Below are positions 29,901-64,000 of a stretch of 64,000 nt of DNA, piece by piece; the stretch's first letter is position 1, and the number at the start of each line of letters is the position of its first letter. The notes beneath the pieces were generated by a model. That model was not told where the DNA came from. It worked only from the letters and a program-made list of their open reading frames with translations, and searched no databases. The translations under genes were made by a program, and so were the position numbers. The stretch covers positions 185,293 to 249,292 of the forward strand of contig NIVC01001186.1 in assembly GCA_002269645.1 (NCBI GenBank), in the 5' to 3' direction. This DNA comes from Macrostomum lignano (Eukaryota).

Positions 29901-30505
29901 AGGCGCCAGAGTTAATTGGTGTCAGATCATTGTGTCAGATTGGGCGCCAGAATTAATTGGTGTCAGATCATTGTGTCAGATTGGGCGCCAGAATTAATTG
30001 GTGTCAGATCATTGTGTCAGATTGGGCGCCAGAATTAATTGGTGTCAGATCATTGTGTCAGATTGGGCGCCAGAATTAATTGGTGTCAGATCATTGTGTC
30101 AGATTGGGCGCCAGAATTAATTGGTGTCAGATCATTGTGTCAGATTGGGCGCCAGAATTAATTGGTGTCAGATCATTGTGTCAGATATAGGCGCCAGAGT
30201 TAATTGGTGTCAGATCATTGTGTCAGATTGGGCGCCAGAATTAATTGGTGTCAGATCATTGTGTCAGATTGGGCGCCAGAATTAATTGGTGTCAGATCAT
30301 TGTGTCAGATTGGGCGCCAGAATTAATTGGTGTCAGATCATTGTGTCAGATTGGGCGCCAGAATTAATTGGTGTCAGATCATTGTGTCAGATTGGGCGCC
30401 AGAATTAATTGGTGTCAGATCATTGTGTCAGATTGGGCGCCAGAATTAATTGGTGTCAGATCATTGTGTCAGATTGGGCGCCAGAATTAATTGGTGTCAG
30501 ATTTT
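20962..30505. repeat. 42-bp satellite (ataggcgccagagttaattggtgtcagatcattgtgtcagat; 41- and 39-bp variants), about 230 units, 9.5 kb
   Basis: Direct tandem repetition; accounts for all IGARVNWCQIIVSD ORFs. Confidence 0.98.
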
Positions 30506-30873
30506 CAGGACGTTCCTGCAGTAAGGAAGGCAGTTTTGTTACATCATTGTGGCAGATTGCTAGTACTGCAATCAAATCGGTCCCACGATGCTCTTGCGGT
30601 CATAAATTGCATGGCTTTTGAAGCAACTTCCCTCTCGCCTCATCCAGAGCTTTTATTCTCCCATTTTATGACCACATAAAATGTGCAGACTTATACTAAA
30701 AACTGGCGCAGTAACAATAGAGAAACTTGCACATTTTTAATCAGATTATTGATGCAAATTTATTATCCCTGGTCTAAATCGATTGCATATAAGCCGTGGC
30801 AACTCAATTTAGCTCTTGTACTATTCTAACAACAAATTCAACACAAATCACAGCAAGTCAGTGCAGTTTAGCA

Positions 30874-39793
<8,920 letters not shown>

Positions 39794-40557: not shown

Positions 40558-41091
40558 AATTGCTGTTCTAAATAAGTTTTAAATGTATCACCTAGCTATT
40601 CGCTATTACACTTACTGTCCCTCTAACTTAAGTTTCTGATAAATTATGAAAAGATACTGTAAATTACATATATGAATTGAAGATTACAAAAAATATAATG
40701 AAAACCAAATGAAAGTCAGATTTGATAAAGTATAGAGATCCAGGCGATCTATGCAGTGAATATAAACATAGGGCTCGTATCTTAACATAGCAACTTGGGG
40801 GCACAATGAATTAAGCTTTTATCTTGGCTAGAAACTTCAGCGTGACAAAAAAGGTGAAGCTACACCTCTCTTCAATGCATCGCATGAGAGTGTTTAGATA
40901 TAGAAGCAGCGAACTTCCGCTGATTTACATCTGACGCATAAATAAGCTTCGCGCACCTGGAACCTGCCAGGTGCCCCAAAGTTACAGTTAGCAAGATGCA
41001 AGCAGTTGTCTCTGTTTCTGCTTGGTAGAGCATTAGTTTGTAAAACTTACCGATTTTTTAAGCAACCCTGACTTAATAAGACAATCGGACA

Positions 41092-43988
41092 ATGCGGCAA
41101 CTGATTGTGTTGCTTTCAGTTTGCTGCGCCGTTTCGAGCAGAACTTCGCCTGTGCAGTCTTGCCGCTTCCCATCAAAATGCGACTGCACAATCGAAAGGA
41201 AAGATCCCTATCTCATGTGCGTGAAGATGGAGAACTGTCTCAATCAGGCTGACATGAACGCCATCGCTGCTTCAATCAATCCGAACGTTTGTCCCGTAAC
41301 CCATTTGAAAATTTCCTGCTCAAAAGAGTCCAAAGGCAAGGAAATTGAGATCCAATCGGATCTATTCAAGCACTCGAATTGGCAACACCTGAAAGAGCTC
41401 ACTTTCGGATCTCCAGTTGATTACGTCTTCAAAGAAACAAAGGTTTTAAAACACCTGAAGAAACTGCGGTACCTGGAGATGCAGTTTATGAACATCGTCA
41501 CTGACCTCGGTACACTGTCGGAGACAATGTGCTGCTCCGTCAACTTATCGGAATTGCACTTTAGAGGTGTCACGATAAAATCACGGGCATCAACTCTTGG
41601 TCGGAATTCATTCATTGGCTTTCGGTCTCTTAAAAAGGTGACCATTAATAGCTCTCCGTCGATGCTGAAGACAATCAAATACCAGTTCAATACAACTGCT
41701 CCAAGCTTTCTGTTCGAAATTTACGGCAATCTTCCTCGTGGAAACTTCTCCAGCATCAGCTTGACAAACACTGCTAACCGATCTGGCCTTCATTTGGGCT
41801 TGCACGGTGATGATCGTTCATTCCAGCTAGATGCCCCAGCTCAAATCGAAGGGTTCACATTGTCCACATTTTCCATGACTAACTACCATCTGGTGTCTGT
41901 CGGTGAGTCACCGTTTGCCGACTTCCAGCTGCAGACGATCGAGATTTCTTCTTCGCGATTGAATGAGAAGCTGTTAAAGAGGCTGCTGCGAGCTGCAAGC
42001 CGAGTCAAGGACCCCGCGCTCTTCAATAAACTCTCCGTCCAGTTCTCCCTGAGCAAGCCGGGATTCCCGTATGACGACTTCAATCGTCTGTGCGAGTCCT
42101 TGCCTTGGATAAGGGAAATATCCATCAGCCACTCACCGATTAGCTTGTCAGACCCAAACAAGCTGCTCAACTGCTCCCAGCTGAGAACACTGTCATTAAC
42201 CAACACAAAGTTAAATCTGCTGCCACCAAATGTTTTCAGTGGTCTACCCAAACTGAAAACTTTAGTCCTTACGAACTGCCATCTGTACGAGTTTCCCAAA
42301 GAAGCTCTTCGACAAACGCCCAATCTAGAGACGCTCATCATGGAGAAGAACAACAACATGGACGTCAAGGCTACCTCACTTCGAGGCATTCTCCCCAACT
42401 TGCGCTCTCTGGATTTATCCTACGCAAGCATATCTGCTGCACTTGTTGATGCTTTCATGGATCAGAAGAATCTGACCTACTTAAAGCTAAGCAACCTGCA
42501 TAACAACGCATGGTGCACTGTCGGCAAGACTTGGTTCCGTGGATGCGACAAGCTGACGAACCTGGACCTCTCGCAAAACGACATGCTGTCGAAGGCGCTG
42601 TGCCATGCAAACGGGTTCCTCGCACCGCTCAGACATCTTCAACACCTCAACTTGAGAAAGTGTTTAGTCGGCAGACAAACCGATGGAATCATAAAGTCAA
42701 TGCTGACGAATCTCACCTCACTGAGAACTCTTGACTTGGAAGGAAACGACATCGATAAAGTGAAACACATTCTGAGTGTCCGGATGCCCAATCTAACCAC
42801 CTTGAACCTCGCGAAGAACTCCTTCTCCGAATTTTCGTCAGACCTTTTCATTACGAGGACACCGAATCTCAAAGTGCTTAAACTTGCCGCCAACCCAATC
42901 GTGAGTCTGAGGCCTGCAGCTTTCAATCGAATGCCGGATCTCAGGGTGCTCTTCGGAGGTAACCAGTTCGTCTGCTCATGCGACTTGGTGAAGTTTACTG
43001 ACTGGATGAGACAGCAGTACCCGATCTACCAGATTGAGAACAAAGGTTCGTGGCTATCCAATGCAATGTGCAACAAGATGCCTAACGGGTCCCATCCAAT
43101 CAGCAATGTCATGCTGTTGGACTTCCGACTGTCCTGGTGGGACTGCTACAGCAGACGGCTGATTGCTGTGTTGTCCTCGGCGATCGGCGGACTGATGGTT
43201 GTGTTCGCGGTGAGCAGCGCGGTTTCGAGATACCGCTGGAAGCTCCGGTATGCGCTGCTAGCGTTCTGCATTCGGCACGGACTCGTGAGAGGGCGGAAGC
43301 TGCAGAGCGAATGGACCTACGAGTGAGTTTAAATATTGTGCTAATGTCGGATTTATTGGATTTAGGCTAATGTTGAGCTGGTAGATAGTCTGTTCCAAAA
43401 ACTTTGGTACGTTATGGAACGGTATGGAACCAATGCTTAATTGGCGAGTAATTTGATTGATACTTTGATGACCGCCGCAGCGCCTGCTTCATCTACGACG
43501 AGACGGACAGCTCGGTGTCCGAGTGGGTCGGCGACCTCGTCCTCAAGCTTGAGACGGACCTGCGGCTCCGCCTGTACGAAGCCGAGAGAGACGCGCCCGT
43601 CGGGTCCAACATGCTGGACGAGGCGGCCTCGGCCATCGACAAGAGCCGACACGCCGTGCTGGTGCTGAGCCGGGGCTTCCTGGAGAACAGGCTCAACTTG
43701 TACAGCGCACAGTGGAGCAGCGAATCGCTGTTTATGCGCCGCCGCTCTCTGGCCGTTCTCGTCATGAGGGAGAAGCTGAGCGAGTCCGAGCTGCGATTTC
43801 CGGAATGCAAGGTGCTGCATCGGCTGTACCGGATGTGCAAGCGGGACCGGATTGTAGACTGCAGCGGCTGTGGAGTCGGGAGCAACTCCGCGAACCGGCT
43901 GGGACTGCTGCTGTACGACGGCGCGGCCGTGTCGGGGCGGGCGCAGGAGCGTCGGGCTCAGGAGTCCGAGACCGAGTGGCTTCTCTAG
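41092..43988 (+). CDS. Toll-like receptor A (signal peptide, LRRs, LRRCT, TM, TIR); exons 41092-43322 and 43481-43988, 912 aa
   Basis: Hydrophobic N-terminus, LRRNT CRFPSKCDC, LxxLxLxxNxL repeats, LRRCT GNQFVCSCDLVKFTDW...C...C, TM LIAVLSSAIGGLMVVFAVSSAVS then RYRWKLRY. Phase-2 intron GA|gtgagt...ccgcag|C gives EWTYDACFIY; TIR with SEWV, LRL..RD..VG and AIDKSR..VLVLS..FL. Confidence 0.93.
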
Positions 43989-45367
43989 CTCGGGTGATTG
44001 AAATCGGTTTTGCGTCAGGATGGTTGAGATAGACGTCCTGCAAGGTCTTACGGCTCAATTCTTCGACGGAAGTCGCATGACTATATGGCTACTACTCATG
44101 AGAATCTTGTTTTAAGGGCAAAACGCGTTGTCTTCTTTTTTCCTCGGACGAATTCTTTTCTAGTAATAACTTTGAATCTAAACTGAGTCTAAACTAATTC
44201 TAAAATTGGTTTTGACCCATTCGAAAATTGCAAAACTGGTGGCAGAAATATTTTTTACGAAAAATCGGCTAAGTACCTAACATTGTTCTGGGAAATTAAA
44301 AATTTTTCAAATTGTTTCAATTTTTGCATTCACTGATTAAATTTGATTTAATAGTTTTTTTAGTTTCGTTAACTAATTAGACAATCCTATCAATACGTTT
44401 TTTAATTTCATAACCTTTTTTCTACGAGATATTTTTTTAAAATCAATAAATAATTATCTGCTTTAATTTTTACTCATGCATGTAATTGGAATGTGTGTGG
44501 ATATATATCCTACCATTTTAACTGGCCAAATTTTTGTAACAGCTTTAGTTATAAACCTGTGCAAAGAAGCTAATTACAAAAATAGATAAAATTAAATTTT
44601 ACATTAGATAGCTACTGAAATGATTTGACCTAAAGATAAATTTCTTTTAAGAGACAACTTTTTATAATTATTAAAATGTACATACGAGTCAAAGCATTCA
44701 AAAACGATGTCAGCAGTAAAAAACTTTGAAATTTCAGCGATAATAGATGAAATACGCTTGTAGTGTAACGCAAAATAGCTAGTTTTAAAAAAATTGTACA
44801 ATTTTCGGTATTTGTACAATTTACTTTACTCGTAGCAAAGTAATAGCCATTTTTTATTAGTTTAATAACCAAATGAAGTACGTACGAGCGTATTAGCTAG
44901 CTACAAAGTCGCAACAATTTAAAGTAGTCAGTTTAAAAATTAAACCTTTTTGTACTACTGTAATGACATTGTACTAGCTCGTAACAATTGGTTCAATTGC
45001 TGAGATGTCAACTTTTACGGGGGAATAGACTGGGGGCAGCAATTGTCTTGAGCTCTGCCATTCTGGATTAAGTCAAGTGCTCCTAAGCTCAAACTGGCTG
45101 CAATAGCTATATTAAATTGTCACAGTGTACGACTCTGTGCATTGGGTGTAGGCTAACGTGTTGCCGCAGTCGGACTCCCAAACACTACGCAGTTGCTCGT
45201 CCAGCCACTGAGGCTTATGTCAAAAGTGATAGACCCATTGGGCAGATGTGCAGCCGACAGCTCAGCCGCAGCTATTTGCGCGGCGCATCTGAAAGCTGCT
45301 GCGTACGGCTGTTCAGTCCAAAGACTGGGGGGTCGCCACACACCCTCAATTACCCCAGCTAATGCTG

Positions 45368-45494
45368 GCACCAAATTTACAGCTGGGTGAACTGAAGCAA
45401 TGCAGAGTTAAGTGCCGTGCTCAAGGACACAAATTGTTCCGAGTCTGACCTTATTCAGTATTGAGTCTGACGCTCTAACCATTAGGCTATAACC
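45368..45494 (-). mobile_element. tRNA-headed CORE-type SINE (duplicate of 52568 copy)
   Basis: Reverse complement of the 52568 SINE, within the duplicated TLR 3' flank. Confidence 0.65.
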
Positions 45495-45584
45495 TTTAGT
45501 AGAGATGGTTTGGGATCTTCCAGAAAGTAAAGGTTAGCTCGCAATTAATTCAAAATTTTTTTTTCAAAACGATCCCATCCAGCT

Positions 45585-48500
45585 CTAGTCGTCAGACAGA
45601 AGCGACTTCGTCCCTGCGGCCTCGGCACCACGCTCCTGCGACCGTCCCGACACGTCCGCGCCGTCGTACAGCAGCAGTCCCAGCCGGTTCGCGGAGTTGC
45701 TGCCGACTCCGCAGCCGCTGCAGTCTACAATCCGGTCCCGCTTGCACATCCGGTACAGCCGATGCAGCACCTTGCATTCCGGAAATCGCAGCTCGGACTC
45801 GCTCAGCTTCTCCCTCATGACGAGAACGGCCAGAGAGCGGCGGCGCATGAACAGCGACTCGCTGCTCCACTGTGCGCTGTACAAGTTGAGCCTGTTCTCC
45901 AGGAAGCCCCGGCTCAGCACCAGCACGGCTTGTCGGCTCTTGTCGATGGCCGAGGCCGCCTCGTCCAGCATGTTGGACCCGACGGGCGCGTCTCTCTCGG
46001 CTTCGTACAGGCGGAGCCGCAGGTCCGTCTCGAGCTTGAGGACAAGGTCGCCGACCCATTCGGACACCGAGCTGTCCGTCTCGTCGTAGATGAAGCAGGC
46101 GCTGCGGCGGTCATCAAAGTATCAATCAAATTACTGGCCAATTAAGCATTGGTTCCATACCGTCCAGGAGCCTAAAAGCTTTACTTCGCACCTACCATGT
46201 TTTATCATCCAAGTTCGTAGAGCTTACCAATTCAGTTGTACCAAAGTTTTTGGAACAGACCATCTACCAGCTCAACATTAGCCTAAATCCAATAAAGTCC
46301 ATTCTAAAGGGGAATGTTTTTCCATTGAAAGCTACTTGCACAATATCGAAACTCACTCGTAGGTCCATTCGCTCTGCAGCTTCCGCCCTCTCACGAGTCC
46401 GTGCCGAATGCAGAACGCTAGCAGCGCATACCGGAGCTTCCAGCGGTATCTCGAAACCGCGCTGCTCACCGCGAACACAACCATCAGTCCGCCGATCGCC
46501 GAGGACAACACAGCAATCAGCCGTCTGCTGTAGCAGTCCCACCAGGACAGTCGGAAGTCCAACAGCATGACATTGCTGATTGGATGGGACCCGTTAGGCA
46601 TCTTGTTGCACATTGCATTGGATAGCCACGAACCTTTGTTCTCAATCTGGTAGATCGGGTACTGCTGTCTCATCCAGTCAGTAAACTTCACCAAGTCGCA
46701 TGAGCAGACGAACTGGTTACCTCCGAAGAGCACCCTGAGATCCGGCATTCGATTGAAAGCTGCAGGCCTCAGACTCACGATTGGGTTGGCGGCAAGTTTA
46801 AGCACTTTGAGATTCGGTGTCCTCGTAATGAAAAGGTCTGACGAAAATTCGGAGAAGGAGTTCTTCGCGAGGTTCAAGGTGGTTAGATTGGGCATCCGGA
46901 CACTCAGAATGTGTTTCACTTTATCGATGTCGTTTCCTTCCAAGTCAAGAGTTCTCAGTGAGGTGAGATTCGTCAGCATTGACTTTATGATTCCATCGGT
47001 TTGTCTGCCGACTAAACACTTTCTCAAGTTGAGGTGTTGAAGATGTCTGAGCGGTGCGAGGAACCCGTTTGCATGGCACAGCGCCTTCGACAGCATGTCG
47101 TTTTGCGAGAGGTCCAGGTTCGTCAGCTTGTCGCATCCACGGAACCAAGTCTTGTCGACAGTGCACCATGCGTTGTTATGCAGGTTGCTTAGCTTTAAGT
47201 AGGTCAGATTCTTCTGATCCATGAAAGCATCAACAAGTGCAGCAGATATGCTTGCGTAGGACAAATCCAGAGAGCGCAAGTTGGGGAGAATGCCTCGAAG
47301 TGAGGTAGCCTTGACGTCCATGTTGTTGTTCTTCTCCATGATTAGCGTCTCTAGATTGGGCGTTTGTCGAAGAGCTTCTTTGGGAAACTCGTACAGATGG
47401 CAGTTGGTAAGGACTAAAGTTTTCAGTTTGGGTAGACCACTGAAAACATTTGGTGGCAGCAGATTTAACTTTGTGTTGGTTAATGACAGTGTTCTCAGCT
47501 GGGAGCAGTTGAGCAGCTTGTTTGGGTATGACAAGCTAATTGGTGAGTGGCTGATGGATATTTCCCTTATCCAAGGCAAGGACTCGCACAGACGATTGAA
47601 GTCGTCATACGGGAATCCCGGCTTGCTCAGGGAGAACTGGACGGAGAGTTTATTGAAGAGCGCGGGGTCCTTGACTCGGCTTGCAGCTCGCAGCAGCCTC
47701 TTCAACAGCTTCTCATTCAATCGCGAAGAAGAAATCTCGATCGTCTGCAGCTGGAAGTCGGCAAACGGTGACTCACCGACAGACACCAGATGGTAGTTAG
47801 TCATGGAAAATGAGGACAATGTGAACCCTTCGATTTGAGCTGGGGCATCTAGCTGGAATGAACGATCATCACCGTGCAAGCCCAAATGAAGGCCAGATCG
47901 GTTAGCAGTGTTTGTCAAGCTGATGCTGGAGAAGTTTCCATGAGGGAGATTGCCGTAAATTTCGAACTGAAAGCTTGGAGCAGTTGTATTAAATTGGTAT
48001 TTGATTGTCTTCAGCATCGACGGAGAGCTATTAATGGTCACCTTTTTAAGAGACCGAAAGCCAATGAATGAATTCCGACCAAGAGTTGATGCCCGTGATT
48101 TTATCGTGACACCTCTAAAGTACAATTCGGATAAGTTGACGGAGCAGCACATTGTCTCCGACAGTCTACCAAGGTCAGTGACGATGTTCATAAACTGCAT
48201 CTCCAGGTACCGCAGTTTCTTCAGGTGTTTTAAAACCTTTGTTTCTTTGAAGACGTAATTAACCGGAGATCCGAAAGTGAGCTCTTTCAGGTGTTGCCAA
48301 TTCGAGTGCTTGAATAGATCCGCTTGGATTTCAATTTCCCTGCCTTTGGATTCTTTTGAGCAGGAAATTTTCAAATGGGTTACGGGACAAACGTTCGGAT
48401 TGATTGAAGCAGCGATGGCGTTCATGTCAGCCTGATTGAGACAGTTCTCCATCTTCACGCACATGAGATAGGGATCTTTCCTTTCGATTGTGCAGTCGCA

Positions 48501-48587
48501 TTTTGTTGGGAAGCGGCAAGACTGCACAGGCGAAGTTCTGCTCGAAGCGGCGCAGCAAACTGAAAGCAACACAATCAGTTGCCACAT
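45585..48587 (-). CDS. Toll-like receptor B; exons 48587-46357 and 46101-45585, 915 aa
   Basis: Exon 1 differs from TLR-A at only 13 of 744 aa by my alignment; same intron position and phase; TIR exon ends GAEAAGTKSLLSDD*. Confidence 0.93.
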
Positions 48588-49327
48588 TGTCCGATTGGCC
48601 TAGTAAAATTAGTGGCTTTTTAATTCACGCTTATTTCAAGGCTGTCGGAATAGAAAGTTGGCTTTTTTATAGCCATTACTTTCGCGTTATTAGCAGACAC
48701 ACGGTGGTGCTGTGCAGACATGTATATGCATACATTTACGTCTAGTTCAAGGTTAATCGAGGGAGAATGTGTATTTGCGTCTAATTTCTAGCATAATTTT
48801 AGGCCCACAGTAGCAGAATAAATTGCGCACTTCGCTACTTAACAAGCTATACGCAGCTACCTTTGCATATGGCTGGCACAGATGACTAAAAATAAGCCTT
48901 CTAGGCCAATTTAAAAGTCAGGTTTCAGCTAAGTTGACGATTTTTTATAAATCGTTTCGATTGTTTAATGATTTTCTACAAACTTCTTGCAGCACTTCCT
49001 GCCTTATTCGAAATTGGCATACGCGGTCACGTGCTGTACCAAATTGCCCACAACAACATGGCAACTTTGATAGAAATCGATATGAAACTTTAAAATGGTA
49101 GAAAACATGAACGCTTAGTTATAAACAATAATCGGTTGCATTTGAACAGTATAGTAGTTGCGCTGCCTACGCATATGTTTAGGTGAAATTAACGCAAAAC
49201 GCATGACATGAGGTAATACTCGTAAACAACTTGTTTCATCGGATCGAGCATCGCTTCGCGCATTTATAAACTGTTTCTGCCCGTAGGCTAACTCTGTGCT
49301 ACATTGTTGGCTGGACTTTAGCGACGA

Positions 49328-52300
49328 ATGAATTGGTTAACTTGTCTGCTTTTTAGTTGCTTTCTGCTTCTCGTGGCTTCGGGAGCGGACGCCAACAACG
49401 CGGTACCTTGCAGCTTTCCTGAGAAATGCTCCTGCGAGTTGAGGAATGCCGGCACAAAACTCTGGTGCAAAGGCATGCAGAACTGCTTCAGTCAGGCTGG
49501 CATGGACGCACTTGGAGCTTCAATGAATCCTGTAAGTTGTCCAGTGAAAATGGTAACACTCAGCTGCAATAGGGAATCCGTTTGGCCGATAGTTGAGATC
49601 ACATCGGAGCTGTTTCGGCACGAGCAATGGCGGAGACTGGAAGAGTTGTACATCGGCACGTCGTGCAAATTTGTGTTTAGAGAGAAACGGGTCTTGTCGA
49701 ATTTACCAAACCTAAAGTCGTTTTCGCTGCGGAACAACGACTTATCTGCGAATCTCGGCGAGTTCTCCGAAATATTCTGCTGCCCGAAGGGACTGTCTGA
49801 GATTTTAATTGACAGCCTAGGAGCAGAACAAATGGGTACACGATTCGGACAGAGATCGTTTCTAAAGTTGAATGCGTTAAAAAAGTTCACCGTGATCCGA
49901 TCGCCAAAGCTCTTCGATCGATTAGAATTTGTGCTCAACACCAGCTCGCCGGCGTTCTCGTTCCACTGGCACGGCAAGTTGCCGCACTCCAATAAGGAAT
50001 TTTCTAGTCTGTTATTCACGAATCTGGCTAGCAGGAGCAGTCTCGAACTGCTGATTTCGGATGGCGCCACCCAGTTGGAGTTGGACTCGCCTGCTCAGCT
50101 CAGTGGCTTCGATTTCACCAGGCTGGACATCCAGAACACTCGGCTGTCGCGCATCGGAGACGCGCCATTCCGAAACTTCACACTTAAAGACATTTCCATA
50201 ACTGCCGCTGGACTAAATGAAATCATGCTGCCCCAGCTGCTGCGCGCAATCGCCAAAGTCAAGAATCCGCTAGCGGTGAGAACTCTGGCTCTGGAGTTTA
50301 ACTATAAAAAGCGCGGATTTCCGTACGATGAGTTCAACGCACTGTGCAAGGCTCTGCCACTGTTGCGTCGATTGTCATTAAGTCACTCGTCGGTGAGCTT
50401 TGGTCAGTCTGAGCAGTACTTCGACTGTCCTCAGCTATTCCTGCTGTCAATTACGAACTGCAACCTGCAGGACGAGGACATTCCACCGCGAGCATTCGAC
50501 AAATTGACTCGACTAGAAAACATACGGTTAATTAATAACCAATTGAGTACGGTGCCTAAGGACCTGCTCCGTAATTTGAGTCAAATCACCTACCTTGACC
50601 TCAGTCAGAATAGACAACTGAAATTGAAAGCATCTTCGTTTCGGGGCATTTTGCCCAGCCTGCAGACCCTGCGCCTGTCGCGGACGGGCTACACGGAGCC
50701 ACTCACTGATGCATTTGTTGATCAGTCAAATCTTACCGAGCTGCACCTCAATCAACTGGTAGAACTGAGATCCACACGCTGTCCGTTTAGGAAGACTTGG
50801 TTTAAAAACTGTTCTAAACTGAAAACACTTAACCTAGCTGGTGATCACTTTCTGAATTACGGAGAGTGCCATGGCGGTGACTTCTTTGATCCGTTGACTA
50901 GCTTGGAAAGTCTCTCCATAAGCTCCTGCGACTTTGGCCATCAGTCGGATGGAACTATCAAGGCTCTGCTGTCGAAACTCTCAACACTAAAAACATTAAT
51001 GGCTTCCGGCAACAAGCTGGCAAGACTTGAATTCATTTTGAACAGAAAGTTTGAAAATTTAAACCTTCTAGACGTCTCTTGGAATTCCTTCTCAAGCATT
51101 CCAGTGGACCTGATTGCCACAACAACCCCCGCACTGCGCAACCTGGAACTAATGGAGGTCCCTCTAGCCAACATAGATCCAAAAGCATTCGACAAACTGC
51201 CGAAGCTTCGTCTCAGGCTCGGTCGCAATCAATTCAGGTGCGCGTGCAACCTGATGCCATTCGCCGATTGGCTCAGAGAGCAGTGGCCCGTCTATCAGCT
51301 GGAAAGCAAAGGCGATTGGCTGCTCAACGCCATCTGCTACACAGCCTCGAACTCTACCAAGCGAGTGATCGACTTCCGCCTGTCCTGGTGGGACTGCTAC
51401 AGCCGACGCCTGATTTTTATTCTATCCGCATCGATTGGTGGCCTGCTGATTGTGTTTGTCCTGACCGCTCTGCTGTCGCGCTACCGGTGGAAGCTGCGCT
51501 ACACAATACTTGCCTTCGGCATTCGTAACGGAATTGTGAACAGGAAGCAGCAGAACGAATGGACTTATGAGTAAGTTGTGGAGCTCAATAAATACCAATA
51601 ATTGAACGACGGGCTGTTGGCGCACCCTGTGCCTCACACTACCACCGCTGAGGCAATCTTGCCCATTCCACTGACTCCCTCAGCACATACAATCGCTCCA
51701 ATACCGTACACAGGCAAACACTCACACACGCTAACACAGGGTGTACAGCGGCGCTGACTTTCTAATCGGTCAGGCATGCACAGTCTCTGTGCCTTGGGGC
51801 TTGGCCCTCGTGGCTTTGTATACTTGAAATCTCAATTTGCTACTGAACATTTCCAAGCCATTGTTCCTGAATGAAGCCAGCCCTGAGCTCTGATCCCACA
51901 CCTGACTGAATCCACTCCCACCTCCGCAGCGCCTGCTTCATCTACGACGAGACGGACAGCACGGTTTCCGAGTGGGTCGGCGACCTCGTCCTCAAGCTCG
52001 AGACGGACCTGCGGCTCCGCCTGTACGAAGCCGAGAGAGACGCGCCCGTCGGGTCCAACATGCTGGACGAGGCGGCCTCCGCCATCGACAAGAGCCGACA
52101 CGCCGTGCTGGTGCTGAGCCGGGGCTTCCTGGAGAACAGACTCAACCTGTACAGCGCACAGTGGAGCAGCGAGTCGCTGTTCATGCGCCGCCGCTCTCTG
52201 GCCGTTCTCGTCATGAGGGAGAAGCTGAGCGAGTCCGAGCTGCGATTTCCGGAATGCAAGGTGCTACATCGGCTGTACCGGATGTGCAAGCGGGACCGGA

Positions 52301-52476
52301 TTGTAGACTGCAGCGGCTGCGGAGTCGGGAGCAACTCCGCGAACCGGCTGGGACTGCTGCTGTACGACGGCGCGGACGTGTCGGGACGGGCGCAGCAGCG
52401 TCGGGTTCAGGAGTCCGAGACCGAGTCTGATGGTGCCGAGGCCGCAGGGACGAAGTCGCTTCTGTCTGACGACTAG
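49328..52476 (+). CDS. Toll-like receptor C; exons 49328-51570 and 51930-52476, 929 aa
   Basis: Signal peptide, LRRNT CSFPEKCSC, LRRs, LRRCT GRNQFRCACNLMPFADW, TM LIFILSASIGGLLIVFVLTALLS then RYRWKLRY; same phase-2 intron before the TIR exon. Confidence 0.93.
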
Positions 52477-52567
52477 AGCTGGATGGGATCGTTTTGAAAA
52501 AATTTTTTTTGAATTAATTGCGAGCTAACCTTTACTTTCTGGAAGATCCCAAACCATCTCTACTAAA

Positions 52568-52700
52568 GGTTGTAGCCTAATGGTTAGAGCGTCAGACTCA
52601 CTACTGAATAAGGTCAGACTCGGAACCATTTGTGTCCTTGAGCAAGACACTCAACTCTGCATTGCTTCAGTTCACCCAGCTGTAAAGTGGGTGCCAGCAT
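52568..52700 (+). mobile_element. tRNA-headed CORE-type SINE (3' extent uncertain)
   Basis: A-box gtagcctaatggttagagcg, then tgtgtccttgagcaagacactcaactctgcattgcttcagttcacccagctgtaaagtggg, which aligns by eye with the MIR/CORE domain (tgtgaccttgggcaagtcacttaacctctctgtgcctcagtttcctcatctgtaaaatggg). Confidence 0.68.
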
Positions 52701-53939
52701 TAGCTGGGGTAATTGAGGGTGTGTGTGTGGCGACCCCCCAGTCCTTGGACTGAACAGCCGTACGCAGCCTTCAGATGCGCCGCGCAATAGCTGCGGCTGA
52801 GCTGTCGGTTGCACATCTGCCCAATGGGTCTATCACTTTTGACATAAGCCTCGTCAGTGGCTGGACGAGCAACTGCGTAGTGTTTGGGAGTCCGACTGCG
52901 GCAACACGTTAGCCTACACCCAATGCACAGAGTCGTACACTGTGACAATTTAATGTATAGCTATTGCAGCCAGTTTGAGCTTAGAAGCAGTTGACTTAAT
53001 CCAGAGTGGCAGAGCTCAAGACAATTGCTGCCCACAGTCTATGGCCAAAAACTGTGACAGGTGAACAAAGATCTTTGGAGCATTAACTTTGTCCTCTCGA
53101 TTCTGCTGAAGGCTTAACATCTCTCTCTAACCTACAAATCAGTAACAATATGAGCGCTTGCAAGATGAAACTAGCGACACTAGCTATGAAACGGCCCTGG
53201 CCGAGCTGGGTGACTCAAAACAAGCCTCGGTGCCCAAATAAAGACCGATGTTCGCTATTCATTTTCTTGAGCCACACTAAATTCACTTTTAATGCATTAA
53301 ATTTGATCTAATGTAATTGCATACTCCTACAAGTGACAAAGAAGACAAATAATTGAGTCACACTAACATCAATCGTGTTTTATTCACTAGAGTCCTTTGT
53401 CGCATCTGCAGGTACTCAGTTTAAACAGTTTTAATATTTATTATTTGTTAATTTCGGCTATCAATTACACGAACTCGATCGTCCTTGATCTCACTGGCCA
53501 GTCACGTGGCAAGAGGGGTTCAATAAAATTGCTACAGTACCTCCTGGCTTAGCAGTTTATAGTCAGAGAGGCAAGAGCAGCGGAGAAACCCGGAAATGAC
53601 AGGAAGACTAAAAATGATTTTGAATTATTGCGATTTGGAAATAAACAGGTTTAAACATGGTTATCAGTCAGTAGTGGGGGGAAGTTAAGTTAAATCGCTT
53701 TGAACTTTTATAATGAGCTTGATGCGGTTTTATGCTAGCAACTTCCTTTTTGTTAATATTGTTAAAATTGGACGCTTAAAATCGGCCTTCAAATAATTTC
53801 TTTCCAAGAGACATCCATATAATCTAACTTTGCCAATAGTGTTCTAATGAATGCATAGCTTTTGGTTCAATAGACCCCACCCCTGTCAAGGTAGTTCGAA
53901 ACCTCAACCCCAGAGTCGCTCTGATTGGCTGGTGAGCAA

Positions 53940-56900
53940 TTAAAGTTCGTCCTTGGCCGCAGCATCGGCGGGCAATTTTTCCATGAAAGTCTTGACGCCA
54001 GCCTCCGTGATGGGCGCCTCAGCATAGTCCTGGCTCTTCTTGCCGTCACTAAACAGCATGAAGGTTGGGAAGCCTTCGACTTTCTGGTCCTCGCACAGCT
54101 CTGCGGAATAGATGAGGTTTTTAAGGTTGAAAATCCTGCTCTACTGAGTGTCTACTCATCTACTCTAATGAGTGCTTACTCATCTACTCTAATTAGTGTC
54201 TACTCATCTACTCTAATGAGTGCCTACTCATCTACTCTAATGAGTGCCTACTCATCTACTCTAATGAGTGCCTACTCATCTACTCTAATGAGTGTCTACT
54301 CATCTACTCTAATGAGTGCCTACTCATCTACTCTAATGAGTGTCTACTCATCTACTCTACTGAGTGCCTACTCATCTACTCTAATGAGTGCCTACTCATC
54401 TACTCTAATGAGTGCCTACTCATCTACTCTACTGAGTGCCTACTCATCTACTCTAATGAGTGCCTACTCATCTACTCTACTGAGTGCCTACTCATCTACT
54501 CTAATGAGTGCCTACTCATCTACTCTACTGAGTGCCTACTCATCTACTCTACTGAGTGCCTACTCATCTACTCTAATGAGTGTCTACTCATCTACTCTAA
54601 TGAGTGTCTACTCATCTACTCTAATGAGTGTCTACTCATCTACTCTAATGAGTGTCTACTCATCTACTCTAATGAGTGTCTACTCATCTACTCTAATCAC
54701 CCACGCAATGAACCCCCAAGCTCACTCTCGTTAGCCTTGACATCGCAGTTGACTGCCGCCAAGACTTTGCCCTGCGCTCCAACCAGACCTTCGGCCGCTT
54801 TGTCGAACGCGGGCTTGGCCTGCTGGCAGTGCGGGCACCAAGGCGCGTAGAACATCACCAGGACGTACTTGTTAGACTTGATTGACTCGTCGAACTGCTC
54901 AGAGCCCTCCAAGTAGGTCACATGCTTCATCTTGTCCTCGGGCTTCTCAGCTTGCCCACCAGCGGCCGATTCTTCTTTGCCGCTGTCTCCCGGCTTCTTC
55001 TCTTCTTCCACCGGAGTGGGCGGCACCTTCTCTTTAGGCGGGTTGCTGATGAAATCCAACAGCGGTTTGGCCTCAATTTCGTCCTCGAACTCCGCCCACA
55101 TTTCGCGCTTCTTCATCAGTCGGATAGTGGGGTAGCCTTCCACTTTCTCGTCTTCGCAGAGCTCTGTAATATTATGTTATGGTAACAGTGGTGGCGACTT
55201 TAAAGACAGTGGTTGGTAAAACATCAAAGAAGCAAATACAGTGTCGGTAAACATCAAAGAGCCATCAGTGTCGGCAGAGATCAAAGAAACAAATACAGTG
55301 TCGGTAAACATCAAAGAACCACCAGTGTCGGCAGAGATCAAAGAAAAAAGCACAGTGTCGGTAAACATCAAAGAGCCATCTGTGTCGGCAGAGATCAAAG
55401 AAGCAAGCACAGTGTCGGCAGAGATCAAAGAAGCAAGCACAGTGTCGGCAGAGATCAAAGAAACAAACACAGTGTCGGCAGAGATCAAAGAACTTGTCCC
55501 AAATGTCAACAATCCACTCACTCTGGTTGTCCTTCTGGTCGCAGTTGATCGCCGCCAAGATATTTCCTGCCACCGGTTTGGCTTCCAAATCCTTGGCCGC
55601 CTTCTCGAACTTCGGTTTGCTGTCCTTGCAGTGCGGGCACCAGGGAGCATAGTAAAAGACCAGAACGAACTCATGGCTATTTAGGATCTCTGAGTAGTTG
55701 CCGGCGCCCAGGTAGGTCACGCCGGCCATGCTGCGATGGTTAAAACGGATTGAAAAAATTTAAATAATCTGACTAGCTATACTAGGTCCCGATCAAGTAC
55801 TGAAAGTAGTGCGCATTGTAAAAACTAGTATTTATTATGATTATATTAATAAACGATTACAACGTACTGTCCACCTAAGGCAATGTCGTTAACACACCGA
55901 AGACAATGTCGGTAATACACCGAAGACAATATCGGTAATACACCGAAGACAATATCGGTAATACACCGAAGACAATGTCGATAATACACTAAAGACAATG
56001 TCGGTAATACACTAAAGACAATGTCAATAACACATCGAAGACAATGTCGGTAATACACCGAAGACAATGTCGGTAATACACCGAAGACAATGTCGATAAC
56101 ACACCAACGACAATGTCGGTAACACACCGAAGACAATGTCGATAACACACCAACGACAATGTCGGTAACACACCGAAGACAATGTCGATAACACACCAAC
56201 GACAATGTCGGTAACACACCGAGGACAATGTCGATAACACACCAACGACAATGTCGGTAACACACCGAGGACAATGTCGATAACACATCGAAGACAATGT
56301 CGGTAGAACACGGAAGACAATGTCGATAACACACCAACGACAATGTAGATAACACACCAACGACAATGTCGATAACACACCAATGACAATGTCGGTAACA
56401 CACCGAGGACAATGTCGATAACACATCGAAGACAATGTCGGTAGAACACGGAAGACAATGTCGATAACACACCAACGACAATGTCGATAACACACCAACG
56501 ACAATGTCGATAACACACCAACGACAATGTCGGTAACACACCGAAGACGATGTCGGTAACACACCAAAGACAATGTCGGTAATACAGCAAAGATAGTGTC
56601 GATAACACATCGAAGACAATGTCGGTAGCACACGGAAGACACTGTCGGTAACACACCGAAGACAATGTCGGTAATACAGCAAAGATAGTGTCGGTAACAC
56701 ACCAAAGACAATGTCGGTAACACACCGAAGACACTGTCGGTAACACACCGAAGACAATGTCGGTAGCACACGGAAGACAGTGTCGGTAACACACCAAAGA
56801 CAATGTCGGTAATACAGCAAAGATAGTGTCGGTAACACACCAAAGACAATGTCGGTAACACACCGAAGACAATGTCGGTAACACACCAAAGACAATGTCG

Positions 56901-59103
56901 GTAACACACCAAAGACAATGTCGGTAACACACCGAAGACAATGTCGGTAACACACCGAAGACAATGTCGGTAACACACCAAAGACAATGTCGGTAACACA
57001 CCAAAGACAATGTCGGTAACACACCGAAGACAGTGTCGGTAACACACCAAAGACAATGTCGGTAACACACCAAAGACAATGTCGGTAATACAGCAAAGAT
57101 AGTGTCGATAACATATCGAAGACAATTTCGGTAGCACACGGAAGACAGTGTCGGTAACACACCAAAGACAATGTCGGTAACACACCAAAGACAATGTCGG
57201 TAACACACCGAAGACAGTGTCGGTAACACACCAAAGACAATGTCGGTAACACACCAAAGACAATGTCGGTAATACAGCAAAGATAGTGTCGATAACATAT
57301 CGAAGACAATTTCGGTAGCACACGGAAGACAGTGTCGGTAACACACCAAAGACAATGTCGGTAACACACCAAAGACAATGTCGGTAACACACCGAAGACA
57401 GTGTCGGTAACACACCAAAGACAATTTCGGTAGCACACGGAAGACAATGTCGGTAACACACCAAAGACAATGTCGGTAATACAGCAAAGATAGTGTCGAT
57501 AACATATCGAAGACAATTTCGGTAGCACACGGAAGACAGTGTCGGTAACACACCAAAGACAATGTCGGTAACACACCAAAGACAATGTCGGTAACACACC
57601 GAAGACAGTGTCGGTAACACACCAAAGACAATGTCGGTAATACACCGAAGACACTGTCGGTAACACACCGAAGACACTGTCGGTAACACACCGAAGACAC
57701 TGTCGGTAACACACCGAAGACACTGTCGGTAACACACCAAAGACAATGTCGGTAACACACCGAAGACAGTGTCGGTAACACACCAAAGACAATGTCGGTA
57801 ACACACCAAAGACAATGTCGGTAACACACCAAAGACAATGTCGGTAATACAGCAAAGACAATGTCGGTAATACAGCAAAGACACTGTCGGTAACACACCG
57901 AAGACAATGTCGGTAACACACCGAAGACAATGTCGATAACACACCAACGACAATGTCGATAACACACCGAAGACAATGTCGATAACACACCAACGACAAT
58001 GTCGGTAACACACCGAGGACAATGTCGATAACACACCAACGACAATGTCGGTAACACACCGAGGACAATGTCGGTAGCACACGGAAGACAATGTCGGTAA
58101 CACACCGAAGACAATGTCGATAACACACCAACGACAATGTCGGTAACACACCGAGGACAATGTCGATAACACACCAACGACAATGTCGGTAACACACCGT
58201 AAACAGCAATTAGGAGAGCAGCAACTCACAAGGTGTCGGGCTCCGAGTCTTGGTCGTCCTTCTCGCTGCCAGTCGAAGACGACGGCGGCCGTTTCTCGCC
58301 TTCCTTTGGCGGATTCTTCATGAATTCGATGAGCGCCTTCTCGCTGTTGTCATCCTCAAAGTCCTGGATGAGCTTGCCTTTGCTGTAGAACTTGATAGTC
58401 GGATAGCCCTCGATTTTCTCTTTGGCGCACAGGTCTGGCGAGGTTTTGGTGGGCAGTGAGGGTGAGAGCGTAGAGTGGATAGATAGAGACGGAAGTGTAG
58501 AGTCGTGAGATTGTTAGAGTTGGTAGATAGAGACAGTAGATAGGTAGATATTAGCTTGTAGAAGCATGAGAGAGTAGATTGGGTAGATAGAGACGGCAGA
58601 TAAGTAGATAGTAGAAGCGTGAGAGAGTAGATTGGGTAGATAGAGACGGCAGATAGGTAGATAGTAGAAGCGTGAGAGAGTAGATTGGGTAGATAGAGAC
58701 GGTAAATAGAAGAAGTGTCAGAGAATAGAGTAGGAGTGAGAGAACGCACATGTCACTGCCCGAAGTCCAATGTACGGTAACTACCGATATGTAACGAAAA
58801 GAACTTATTAGCCAAAGCATGACACGGTAAATTACCCTGATTCTTCTTTTCATCGCAGTCGACCATGCCCATAACTTTGCCAGGCTCTTTGGTCACCTCC
58901 TTGGCTGCGTTATTGAACTTCGGCTTGGCCTCGACGCAGTGCGGGCACCAGGGCGCGTAGAACATCACCAGGGAGCCATCGTTGGTGTCGATAGTCTTGT
59001 GAAAGCTGGCCGCGTCGAGTTCAAGAGCCTCGGCGCTGACGGAATGCGCCAGAATGGGCAGCAGCAGCAGGATGGCTAGCAGTGACTGATTTTCCAACAG
59101 CAT
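53940..59103 (-). CDS. Protein disulfide isomerase, PDIA5(PDIR)-like, three CPHC thioredoxin domains + KDEL; exons 59103-58836, 58434-58230, 55730-55522, 55163-54726, 54100-53940; 426 aa
   Basis: Signal peptide, three FY(Y)APWCPHC motifs, each followed by (V/I)(D/N)C...N(Q/E)xLC..EK(I/V)EG(Y/F)PT, and C-terminal AAKDEL*. All four GT-AG junctions are in phase and the total of 1281 nt is divisible by 3. Confidence 0.92.
54137..54697. repeat. 24-bp minisatellite (tactcatctactctaatgagtgcc), about 23 copies, PDI intron 4
   Basis: Direct repetition. Confidence 0.95.
55200..55495. repeat. 27/30-bp minisatellite (cagtgtcggcagagatcaaagaa.../cagtgtcggtaaacatcaaagag...), PDI intron 3
   Basis: Direct repetition. 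Confidence 0.9.
55880..58200. repeat. 23-bp minisatellite (gacaatgtcggtaacacaccgaa), about 100 copies, PDI intron 2
   Basis: Direct repetition; accounts for the three 720-790 aa minus-strand ORFs. Confidence 0.97.
58540..58705. repeat. About 51-bp purine-rich tandem repeat, about 3 copies, PDI intron 1
   Basis: gagagagtagattgggtagatagagacggcagata(a/g)gtagatagtagaagcgt repeated. Confidence 0.8.
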
Positions 59104-62549: not shown

Positions 62550-63229
62550 CTACATGGCATGGTAGGGATATGATGGCGGATGCTGGGCAGGATGGTAGGG
62601 CTGCTGCAGATAGTCAGGATATTGCTGAGCATAGTCCGGCGGAGCACTAGCAGATGATGCTGAAGCCATCATCACTTGACGTTGCGACATCAGGTGCTGA
62701 TGCTGGTAGTGCTGGTACTGCTGCTGCTGATAGTAAACTGGCGGCTGCTGCTGATGCTGAGGGTACATCTGCGGGTACTGCTGCTGCTGGTAGGGTGGCC
62801 CGCCGGCAGCTGAGGATGTGGCAGCGGCTGCGGCTGCCGAAGCCGCTGCGGCGGCGGCCGCTGCTGCCGCAGGCTGCGCTGTCGCAGCTGATGAAGCCGT
62901 CGGAGCGGCAGCAGAAGCAGCAGCAGAAGCGGTGGCATTGGTACCACTACTACTACTAGTAGGCATGTACTGGATTGTGTTCGCACTGCGTGCGGAGATC
63001 TGCACACCGGCAGTTGATGTCGGATGCTGCGGGGGCGGCGGCTGCTGATGCTGATGATGATGATAATGATGATGAGGCGGCGGCTGAGGAGGCTGAGTTG
63101 ACTGCTGTTGCACCTGCATATGAGCCTGTGCGCCCATACCGTTAACTGTTTGATAATTCATTTGCTGGACATTCACTTGGGCATTAACGAATGTGTTGTT
63201 AACCACCATTGGCGGCTGCTGCTGAGGTG

Positions 63230-63260
<31 letters not shown>

Positions 63261-63668
63261 CTGTTGCTGCTGCGGAGGCTGGTGCACCACAGGCGGCTGG
63301 GCCATGCTGATAGACTGGAACGGACCGCCGCCCATTGGTACATCTTTGCTCAGCTTGGCTAGGCTGGCTAAGCTAGCCGAAGTGATGTTGCCTAAAGTGG
63401 AAGATCGAGACGAACAGTTTGTAGTCTGGTGCTGCTGCTGCTGCTGCGGGGGCGGCGGGTTCGGGTGATCGAAGGGCGGCATGGACTCGGCAGGCAGTTT
63501 GCAGGGCTCAGACACCACAGATGGCGGCTGCGGTGGCGGCTGCTCAACTGACTGCGGAGGCTGCTGTGGCACCTGCGGCTCCTTTTTGCGTCGCTTTGTC
63601 GTCTTGACAGCTGGCGGCGCTGCCGGAGGCGGAGGCGGCGGCGGGACGGGAGGAGGAAGCTGGGCAGC

Positions 63669-63699
<31 letters not shown>

Positions 63700-63998: not shown

Positions 63999-64000
63999 CT

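Follow-up and report, generated by a model that had tools for sequence, protein, structure and literature searches.

Three receptor genes on a Macrostomum lignano contig

The window analysed here, a stretch of 64,000 nt, contains at positions 41092-52476 three two-exon genes, A (+ strand, 912 aa), B (- strand, 915 aa) and C (+ strand, 929 aa), each of which encodes a protein combining LRRs, a transmembrane (TM) segment and a TIR domain (Table 1). All three reading frames are intact in the window, in agreement with the preliminary description, which reported three LRR-TM-TIR receptor genes at these positions. The first exons are uninterrupted over 744-748 codons in all three genes and are therefore not chance ORFs. 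All three introns are of the GT...AG type and in phase 2, and interrupt the coding sequence at box 1 of the TIR domain, yielding the junction ...EWTY/D-ACFIYDE. The short spacer separating the head-to-head genes B and C might possibly function as a shared or bidirectional promoter.

Table 1. Coordinates of the receptor genes and adjacent features in the window
Feature	Position	Strand	Description
Gene A exon 1	41092..43322	+	744-codon ORF; signal peptide (heuristic call), N-terminal Cys cluster, LRRs, Cys cluster, TM, basic stretch
Gene A intron	43323..43480	+	158 nt, GTGAGT...CGCAG, phase 2; read directly from the sequence
Gene A exon 2	43481..43988	+	TIR domain and short acidic tail; 3' end (…ESETEWLL, then stop) unlike those of B and C
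B 3' flank	45025..45584	-	Homologous to the C 3' flank (52477-53042)
Gene B exon 2	45585..46101	-	TIR domain and tail common to C (…GAEAAGTKSLLSDD, then stop)
Gene B intron	46102..46356	-	255 nt, GT...AG, phase 2
Gene B exon 1	46357..48587	-	Duplicate of A exon 1 in inverted orientation; nt identity 98.8%, 13 aa differences
B-C head-to-head spacer	48588..49327		740 bp; from the gene coordinates
Gene C exon 1	49328..51570	+	Architecture of A/B, only 41% aa identity
Gene C intron	51571..51929	+	359 nt, GTAAGT...CGCAG, phase 2
Gene C exon 2	51930..52476	+	TIR domain and tail
PDIA5-like gene	53943..59101	-	Three thioredoxin domains, KDEL; neighbour, outside the receptor cluster

Positions 43940-64000 of the window are 100% identical over 20,061 nt to contig NIVC01001186.1 of GCA_002269645.1 (assembly Mlig_3_7, Macrostomum lignano), and the neighbouring PDIA5-like gene shows 98% identity to M. 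lignano BOX15_Mlig025167g1. The host, suspected from the letters of the sequence to be a Macrostomum-like flatworm, is thus M. lignano, rather than a mollusc, annelid or echinoderm. The gene order A (forward), B (reverse), C (forward), PDI (reverse) recurs on two further contigs of the M. lignano assembly, and on all three separate contigs the receptor cluster is flanked by the M. lignano MYCBPAP and PDIA5-like genes. Gene A carries a frameshift or a deletion in both other copies of the locus in the assembly; B and C have intact frames on each of the three contigs, exon 1 of B being identical in the two other copies.

The model of gene C coincides exactly with GenBank PAA71095.1 (UniProt A0A267FBF5), a protein named 'TIR domain-containing protein' in UniProt. 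Assembled transcripts were the sole source of the GenBank annotation of Mlig_3_7 (PMC5730564), and the identity of our model with this transcript-derived one indicates that gene C is expressed and spliced. A single mature transcript carrying LRR, TM and TIR is thereby supported for C, and the predicted splicing of exon 1 to exon 2 is borne out by the junction in PAA71095.1. For A and B, by contrast, the exon junction is present only in UniProt/ML2 predictions (P0364 and P0387); both genes are absent from the GenBank annotation, in which C is the only one deposited. In the older ML2 annotation, these genes are fragmentary or chimeric.

Ectodomain and membrane segment

The ectodomains match the Pfam LRR_8 profile with E-values of 9e-30 in A and 3e-21 in C, and LRR_4 and LRR_1 also score above the cut-off for A. 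Approximately 12 clear LRRs occupy aa ~336-625 of A, and the PDB sequence matches over aa ~335-645 include TLR7, TLR8, TLR3, TLR9 and TLR13, as well as LGR4 and other LRR proteins. Across aa ~50-335, which make up the N-terminal ectodomain half, the LRR signal is exclusively sub-threshold: a PDB profile search with this half yielded nothing better than an LRR protein at E 0.26, and the profile comparison between the N- and C-terminal halves was weak (probability 16%). The LRR nature of these N-terminal 280 aa is not demonstrable from the sequence.

Two cysteine clusters are kept between A/B and C, one at the N-terminus (C24/30/32/43/49) and a juxtamembrane CxC...C...C cluster (C628, C630, C660 and C685). 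The latter is the sole cluster of this type (aa 628-685 in A/B and 638-690 in C), and no internal CxC cluster is present. The Pfam LRRNT and LRRCT models have no match in the ectodomain, so the LRRNT and single LRRCT modules of the preliminary description are identified by their Cys pattern, the single juxtamembrane cluster holding up and the profile matches failing. Given exactly one LRRCT-type Cys cluster adjoining the membrane, the receptors would belong to the scc, or V, type. A single Kyte-Doolittle peak (2.3-2.6) marks the TM segment at aa 690-712 and is followed by the basic stretch SRYRWKLRY, and the N-termini, MRQLIVLLSVCCAVSS and MNWLTCLLFSCFLLLVASG, are hydrophobic, in line with a heuristic signal-peptide call. 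A predicted signal peptide and one TM segment between ectodomain and TIR suggest, at the level of such heuristics, a type-I topology.

A divergent TIR domain

The TIR domain scores below the standard profile thresholds, with 17.5 bits against a gathering cut-off of 21.3 for Pfam TIR and 18.6 against 28 for TIR_2. Nevertheless, all phmmer matches in the PDB are TIR domains, with TLR2 first (E 5.5e-5), followed by TLR6, TLR7, TLR1 and TLR10, and then TIRAP. A phmmer search against 1.84 billion representative sequences returned 23 matches at E<=1e-3 (best E 6.4e-12). Source names were checked for 20 of these 23; two are M. lignano, five are nameless, and the named rest are TLRs or animal proteins designated 'TIR domain-containing' or 'uncharacterized'. 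Pfam TIR was strong in each of the nine scanned matches from outside M. lignano.

The domain aligns over its full length with other TIRs, and box 1 (YDACFIYDE) and the R-D of box 2 are kept. The BB-loop reads RDAPVG instead of RDxxPG, so that the proline comes one residue early, FW of box 3 is replaced by LG, and the alpha-C region is devoid of the conserved W-C and Glu. Given the loss of box 3 and the displaced BB-loop proline, canonical coupling to MyD88 is not assured, and NADase-type activity appears unlikely because the conserved alpha-C glutamate column is occupied by Ser. An AlphaFold2 model built from an alignment attained pLDDT 85.3 and pTM 0.84, values that depend on the TIR-domain alignment, the single-sequence model having a pLDDT of 42. 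The 50 PDB matches listed by Foldseek are all TIR domains, with TM-scores of about 0.66-0.75 for the best-superposed ones. In a quick neighbour-joining tree of 37 TIRs without outgroup, the M. lignano TIR is an unplaced long branch. Sequence and model together show a real but divergent TIR. The designation of these receptors as 'canonical' TLRs is too strong in view of the divergent, sub-threshold TIR and the atypical N-terminal part of the ectodomain.

Duplication, selection and gene conversion

Genes A and B are inverted duplicates (dS about 0.026), and the A/B repeat stops 10 nt upstream of the ATG. The pair originated by a recent tail-to-tail inverted duplication, whereas C represents an old paralogue type; hence, the cluster can be described as locally expanding with respect to one event, but not with respect to C. 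The three genes share ~97% identity in exon 2, compared to 55% in exon 1 and 41% of residues in the ectodomains. The high-identity tract begins ~10 nt before the acceptor site, and B and C, but not A, share a 1.1-kb tract of 93.6% identity that covers exon 2 and the 3' flank. The two exons also differ in composition (GC 65% in exon 2 versus 49% in exon 1, and GC3 0.86-0.875 versus 0.60). Some variants are common to paralogues within a locus, for example, sites 210/217 in copies A and C of one assembly locus (L3) and sites 243/252 in copies A and C of another (L2).

Across the nine copies of the TIR exon, 12 variable sites are synonymous and 4 are non-synonymous, and exon 1 shows a dN/dS of 0.3-0.4. 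This pattern of sequence variation is that of purifying selection, with the TIR under strong constraint. The ~97% identity of the TIR exons against 41% for the ectodomains, the mosaic variants and the GC3 of 0.87 point to homogenization of the TIR exon by gene conversion, as judged from nine gene copies in a single assembly. We know of no report of such exon-restricted TIR homogenization in TLR clusters. Concerted evolution of one domain in multigene immune-receptor clusters is a general phenomenon, and the M. lignano cluster resembles such clusters in its diverse recognition domains, homogenized signalling exon and tandem or inverted local duplication.

Comparison with known receptors and with surveys of flatworms

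The closest counterparts are the scc/V-type TLRs (vertebrate TLR7/8/9 and TLR13/22, and invertebrate sccTLRs), which share with the M. lignano proteins the type-I topology, the LRRs, one membrane-proximal CxC...C...C cap, the TM segment and the C-terminal TIR. The best named full-length matches are TLR7, TLR13 and TLR22, whose C-termini align with the M. lignano TIR, and the TLR7/8/9-type TIRs have in common with the M. lignano TIR a 3-residue insertion before 'EWV' of helix alpha-A. However, the LRRs are only ~25% identical and the TIRs 20-30%, and, unlike scc TLRs, the M. lignano proteins display a sub-threshold Pfam TIR, no box 3, a shifted BB-loop Pro, 280 N-terminal residues not recognizable as LRRs, and a TIR on a separate exon.

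Within the same phylum, the only TLR-related proteins reported so far, from planarians and other flatworms, are 'TIR-only' and 'LRR-only' proteins (PMC7958881, PMC8609888); in Schmidtea mediterranea, LRRs are found in none of the 20 TIR proteins (PMC7958881). By contrast, the transcript-derived model of M. lignano joins LRR, TM and TIR in one polypeptide. The split receptor HyLRR/HyTRR of Hydra, which PMC8609888 takes as a model for animals 'lacking' TLRs, is likewise an early-branching or atypical form of Toll-type recognition, and the TIR of Hydra TRR-2 is among the structural matches of the M. lignano TIR. In Hydra, LRR and TIR reside on two proteins, whereas in M. lignano they are joined and the boundary is marked only by the intron.

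The assertion that surveys report TLRs as absent from flatworms is accurate. Orús-Alcalde et al. (2021) listed 0 TLRs for M. lignano and inferred an early loss in platyhelminths (PMC8609888), Saco et al. (2023) recorded no TLRs in Platyhelminthes, the absence has been tied to parasitism (PMC10279657), and a review from 2021 likewise describes flatworms as being without TLRs (PMC7958881). Literature searches using the gene identifiers, Macrostomum TIR/LRR/MyD88 and early-branching flatworm TLRs retrieved no report of these genes and no paper on MyD88 in Macrostomum. The genes were probably missed because their TIR falls below standard profile thresholds and their ML2 models are fragmentary or chimeric. 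A full-length search with A recovered only distant LRR/TLR matches of ~25% identity and omitted M. lignano paralogues present in the collection; hence, it provides no evidence that other flatworms lack orthologues. The exon 1 ORF, used as a query for encoding contigs, retrieved none.

Origin and putative function of the receptors

Taken together, these observations make it very probable that A, B and C are genuine, selectively maintained TLR-type genes of M. lignano, and the preliminary description is supported and largely right. A further-reaching scenario, with a probability of roughly 0.55, is that TLRs were kept past the origin of flatworms, that the early-branching Macrostomorpha retain a small, putatively functional family with a highly derived TIR, that planarians and parasitic flatworms lost theirs later, and that the receptor is modular, with a TIR exon kept uniform by gene conversion under diverging ectodomains. 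The proteins would be type-I membrane proteins in which the ectodomain, with its atypical N-terminal half, ~12 LRRs and one Cys cap, binds a ligand. By analogy with other sccTLRs, ligand-induced dimerization would enable the cytoplasmic TIRs to nucleate a TIR-TIR signalling complex, presumably with an adaptor and possibly in immunity. The cluster comprises two types of paralogue of old divergence, A/B on one side and C on the other, among which recurrent gene conversion would keep the separate TIR exon near-identical, the outcome being one common signalling module on diversified recognition modules.

A more radical variant of this history, which we consider unlikely, is that a TIR exon was added by exon shuffling to an LRR-TM gene family within the Macrostomum lineage, in which case the receptors would be products of convergent TLR evolution, look-alikes that do not go back to the TLR of the bilaterian ancestor. 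The location of the TIR on its own exon, with the intron exactly at the domain start, favours such a re-assembly, as do the N-terminal ectodomain half unlike known TLRs and a TIR without clear clade affiliation. The unit shared by the otherwise dissimilar B and C shows that movement or conversion of the module between genes is possible, but GC-biased gene conversion accounts just as well for this common tract and for the gap in composition between the exons. Furthermore, the nearest TIRs by sequence are those of TLR receptors, not of adaptors or the IL-1R family, the best named matches of the full protein contain the two domains in the same order, and the succession of Cys cap, TM, basic stretch and TIR is the standard TLR order, all of which argues against re-assembly.

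It is considerably less probable still that the proteins derive from TLRs but no longer signal as such, acting in adhesion, guidance or development, like several Drosophila Tolls, or as decoy or inhibitory receptors without MyD88 recruitment. The altered box 3, BB-loop and alpha-C motifs of the TIR would fit this possibility, our literature search found no immune data for these genes, and triclads and neodermatans live without TLRs (PMC7958881, PMC8609888). However, strong constraint on a homogenized TIR suggests that a specific surface for interaction has been kept, and diversified ectodomains combined with a constant signalling domain follow the pattern of pattern-recognition families. Both features are also compatible with a developmental role. 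As for contamination, misassembly or pseudogenes, the DV1 assembly of M. lignano is redundant and repeat-rich (PMC5730564), and copy A bears lesions in two of its three assembly copies, yet an artefact is hardly credible given the flanking M. lignano genes on three contigs, the intact frames, the purifying selection and the transcript-derived model of C; for B and C, all three kinds of artefact are effectively refuted.

A complete, constrained LRR-TM-TIR family, transcript-supported in C, contradicts the '0 TLRs' entry for M. lignano, and would push any loss of TLRs to a later branching point within the flatworms. More generally, surveys based on domain thresholds overlook divergent TIRs, and other groups considered devoid of TLRs, such as gastrotrichs, rotifers and xenacoelomorphs, may be affected likewise. 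With RNAi, transgenesis and a transparent body, M. lignano makes the role of flatworm TLRs in immunity, regeneration or development directly testable. The exon-restricted homogenization of the TIR would, in addition, offer a natural example of a common signalling module on diverging receptors.

Other features of the window

Neither Rfam nor a tRNA scan gave a match in the window, and a tRNA-like stretch in the 3' flank of B and C is not a tRNA gene. A direct-repeat scan for LTRs was dominated by a minisatellite, and local BLAST was used instead. The window also encodes a BEL/Pao polyprotein, the best match of which shows 49% identity.

Gene models and transcript support

Three genes of two exons each occupy positions 41092-52476 of the window (genes A, B and C; see table). 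Gene models and domain evidence bear out the preliminary description of three receptors with a signal peptide (here seen as a hydrophobic N-terminus), leucine-rich repeats (LRR), a transmembrane (TM) segment and a TIR domain. All three introns are GT...AG and in phase 2, and interrupt the Asp codon of '...EWTY|D-ACFIYDE' within the first conserved TIR box. A 740-bp spacer separates B and C, which are arranged head-to-head.

The host had been correctly guessed to be Macrostomum: the product of the neighbouring PDIA5-like gene is 98% identical over its full length to BOX15_Mlig025167g1 of Macrostomum lignano, and contig NIVC01001186.1 (GCA_002269645.1) is 100% identical to window positions 43940-64000 over 20,061 nt. 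On this contig, a gene has been called at exactly the gene C interval, and an exact-sequence look-up showed our 929-residue model to be identical to PAA71095.1 (BOX15_Mlig011375g1; UniProt A0A267FBF5, 'TIR domain-containing protein'). The GenBank annotation of Mlig_3_7 was made from nothing but assembled transcripts and their TransDecoder ORFs (PMC5730564), so the joining of exons 1 and 2 is transcript-supported for C. The A and B models had no exact match in the protein collection, and no gene is called at the A or B positions on the sister contigs. Among UniProt proteins based on the older ML2 annotation, A0A1I8HD87 is a 190-aa fragment crossing an A-type junction, and A0A1I8HEG2 (1670 aa, window ~45000-53000) is a chimera that includes gene B in full, with antisense translations of GC-rich TIR exons and a PDIA5-like gene fragment on its flanks. 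Such chimeric models would defeat domain-architecture surveys.

Features of the window and sister copies of gene A
Feature	Position	Strand	Details
POLR1D/RPAC2-like exon	3610-3963	+	RNA_pol_L_2, E 4e-23
BEL/Pao LTR retrotransposon, complete	6263-13762	-	
BEL/Pao pol ORF, intact	10536-7027	-	Peptidase_A17, RT, integrase, DUF5641
BEL/Pao gag-like ORF, intact	12497-10563	-	DUF1759
MYCBPAP-family gene	30800-39793	+	PF14646, E 2e-11, on 35496-35993
Gene A	exon 1 41092-43322, intron 43323-43480, exon 2 43481-43988	+	912 aa
Gene B	exon 1 48587-46357, intron 46356-46102, exon 2 46101-45585	-	915 aa
Gene C	exon 1 49328-51570, intron 51571-51929, exon 2 51930-52476	+	929 aa
PDIA5-like ER protein	53943-59101	-	three thioredoxin CPHC domains, KDEL signal
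3' exon of 1249-aa Gln/Ala-rich protein	62550-64000	-	no Pfam domain
Gene A sister copies	L002 465-955; L003 2284-4653		contigs NIVC01000026.1, NIVC01001426.1

Domain architecture

The exon 1 product starts with the hydrophobic N-terminus and an N-terminal cysteine cluster, followed by a region of ~280 residues with sub-threshold LRR signal only and by clear LRRs at ~aa 336-625 (Pfam LRR_8, E 9e-30 in A and 3e-21 in C), which in a PDB sequence search match TLR7/8/3/9/13, LGR4 and others. The only CxC...C...C cluster is membrane-adjacent and none is internal to the exon 1 product, which makes this the single-cysteine-cluster ('V-type') architecture, as first described. A single TM helix (aa 690-712) and a basic stretch follow.

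The C-terminal domain falls below the Pfam cut-offs (TIR, 17.5 bits versus 21.3; TIR_2, 18.6 versus 28), and the precomputed Pfam record of the deposited protein lists LRR families only. All other tests, however, agree that it is a TIR domain. Its phmmer matches in PDB are exclusively TIR domains, with TLR2 first (E 5.5e-5), then TLR6, TLR7, TLR1 and TLR10, and the adaptor TIRAP ranking below the receptor TIRs. An exhaustive phmmer search of 1.84 billion cluster representatives yielded 23 matches at E<=1e-3 (best non-self match, E 6.4e-12). Source names were looked up for 20 of these; five had no name, and the named ones are TLRs or 'TIR domain-containing'/'uncharacterized' animal proteins from a stick insect, fish, oyster, brittle star, crinoids, hemichordate, crustaceans and snail. 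Ten matches were scanned with Pfam, and all nine from outside M. lignano contain a strong TIR. In a 26-sequence alignment covering the whole domain, box 1 is conserved and the invariant Arg-Asp and Gly of box 2 are kept; the BB-loop sequence is RDAPVG, its proline one position earlier than usual, 'LG' stands in place of the box 3 'FW', and the alpha-C region lacks Trp-Cys and Glu. AlphaFold2 gave no usable model from the single sequence (pLDDT 42); with the alignment, strands and helices alternate as in TIR (pLDDT 85.3, pTM 0.84). Because it is built on a TIR alignment, this model is a consistency check and not independent proof. All 50 listed Foldseek matches in PDB are TIR domains (TM ~0.66-0.75 for the best-superposed), including IL-18R-beta, MyD88, MAL, TLR15, TLR10, TLR2, TLR6, TLR1 and plant and bacterial TIRs. 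The term 'canonical' used in the preliminary description overstates the case, given the sub-cut-off Pfam score, the shifted BB-loop proline, the lost box 3 and the atypical N-terminal half of the ectodomain.

Retained or rebuilt receptors

Descent of A, B and C from an ancestral TLR is favoured by the nearest TIRs being those of receptors, by the standard module order and by TLR7, 13 and 22 as the top named proteins that match over the full length with the two domains arranged alike. A minority hypothesis, that the LRR-TM-TIR architecture was rebuilt through exon shuffling, draws support from the intron at the TIR domain boundary, the TIR exon's unusual composition and an ectodomain whose N-terminal half is unrecognisable, but sits poorly with those same receptor-like TIRs, module order and two-domain matches.

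In a quick unrooted neighbour-joining tree, the M. lignano TIR is an unplaced long branch. A word-indexed homology search with gene A missed the M. lignano proteins of the collection (P0361-P0364 and P0387, with segments 90-100% identical), so its negative results for this family are unreliable, and its failure to show orthologues from other flatworms is uninformative. Contig ctg5874_26x_l of a eukaryotic assembly (ENA ERZ26052378) carries tandem intronless multiple-cysteine-cluster TLRs at 8868-12619 and 21428-22619 (proteins P0378, P0379 and P0389). Their TIR start, 'IIYDETDERVRQWV', resembles 'FIYDETDSSVSEWV' of M. lignano, with which it shares an unusual box 1 and the pattern of insertion. 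The grouping of these TIRs with that of M. lignano in the tree may reflect long-branch attraction.

Evolution of the cluster

A and B are inverted duplicates lying tail to tail (41082-43341 versus 48597-46338, 98.8%), and the repeat starts just 10 nt upstream of the ATG, implying that the promoters were not duplicated. Their first exons differ by 13 synonymous and 13 non-synonymous changes (dS 0.026, dN/dS 0.30). C shares with A/B only 41% amino-acid and 55% nucleotide identity in exon 1 and, by this divergence, is an old paralogue. The cluster recurs on NIVC01000026.1 and NIVC01001426.1, in the same order beside PDIA5-like and MYCBPAP genes, in keeping with the redundancy reported for the DV1 assembly (PMC5730564).

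The TIR exon is ~97% identical across A, B and C, the high-identity tract starting ~10 nt before the splice acceptor. B and C share at least 560 nt of 3' flank, with a 1.1 kb tract at 93.6%, and A departs from B/C after '...ESETE'. The nine TIR exons differ by 1-12 positions per 447 nt, and their variants are mosaic across paralogue identity, often tracking the locus instead: the A and C copies on contig L3 agree at sites 210/217, and those on contig L2 agree with the window copy of A at sites 243/252. Ahead of a frameshift in one copy, 12 of the 16 variable sites are synonymous and four non-synonymous. The TIR exon has a GC3 of 0.86-0.875, compared with 0.60 for exon 1 and 0.58-0.71 for genes nearby. 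Collectively, these sequence patterns indicate that, under strong purifying selection, the TIR exon alone undergoes recurrent and probably GC-biased gene conversion.

Gene A is intact in the window and damaged in both other assembly copies: one sister contig lacks 1 nt of exon 2 (near nt 399) and the other lacks 521 nt of exon 1; these lesions could be real (pseudogenised A homeologues) or assembly errors. Exon 1 of B is identical on all three contigs, which could reflect interlocus homogenisation or an assembly artefact, and C varies by ~1%.

The 3' flanks of B (45025-45584, minus strand) and C (52477-53042, plus strand) match over about 560 nt at roughly 93% and hold a tRNA-like stretch (…TAGCCTAATGGTTAGAGCGTCAGACTC…), in which ARAGORN called no tRNA. 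This flank may be SINE-like in nature, or may belong to the conversion/duplication unit.

Putative signalling and published surveys

On the pattern of known TLRs, the ectodomain would bind a ligand, two receptor chains would pair and their juxtaposed TIR domains would then bring in an adaptor that itself contains a TIR. What these putative steps require structurally is present: the topology, LRRs, cysteine cap and TM helix, and a TIR that is intact and constrained. Given the altered BB loop and missing box 3, the partner may be other than conventional MyD88. In the alignment, Ser occupies the conserved glutamate column of enzymatic TIRs, and NADase activity hence seems unlikely.

Published surveys do state the absence given in the preliminary description. 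Orús-Alcalde et al. 2021, using hmmsearch with TIR and LRR profiles and SMART validation on the 2015 genome, reported zero TLRs in M. lignano and inferred an early loss in the phylum (PMC8609888). Saco et al. 2023 likewise reported none from Platyhelminthes, and a 2021 review described Platyhelminthes as being without TLR orthologues, with LRRs in none of 20 TIR proteins of S. mediterranea (PMC7958881). The sub-threshold TIR and the fragmentary or chimeric ML2 models would suffice to explain why the genes were missed. Literature searches on the gene identifiers, on Macrostomum TLR/TIR/LRR/MyD88 and on TLRs in flatworm orders that branch early did not turn up any mention of them. The sequences are public and machine-labelled as TIR-domain proteins but, to judge from the searchable literature, have not been recognised as TLRs. 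They contradict explicit published statements, and the finding corrects the record, with consequences for phylogeny and in an animal amenable to experiment, rather than revealing a new mechanism. The initial observation is thus confirmed and its interpretation supported.

Other features of the window

The BEL/Pao element has 354-nt LTRs (6263-6616 and 13409-13762) that are 100% identical, and looks like a very recent insertion, within a 37-bp minisatellite array (4748-6265 and 13763-16268); its nearest database protein is just 49% identical. The minisatellite load is extraordinary (20956-30502, 55872-58199, 13763-16268, 4748-6265 and ~20 more arrays), with a 42-bp unit repeated 230 times (9.5 kb), a 23-bp unit 101 times, 37-bp units 68 and 41 times, and others. 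The arrays occupy introns and intergenic DNA and yield long spurious ORFs, e.g. 55846-58209. The MYCBPAP-family gene ends just upstream of gene A. In the PDIA5-like gene, two introns are mostly minisatellite, and each thioredoxin domain is interrupted by an intron at an equivalent point, following '...C[DN]xxxNQ/ES'.
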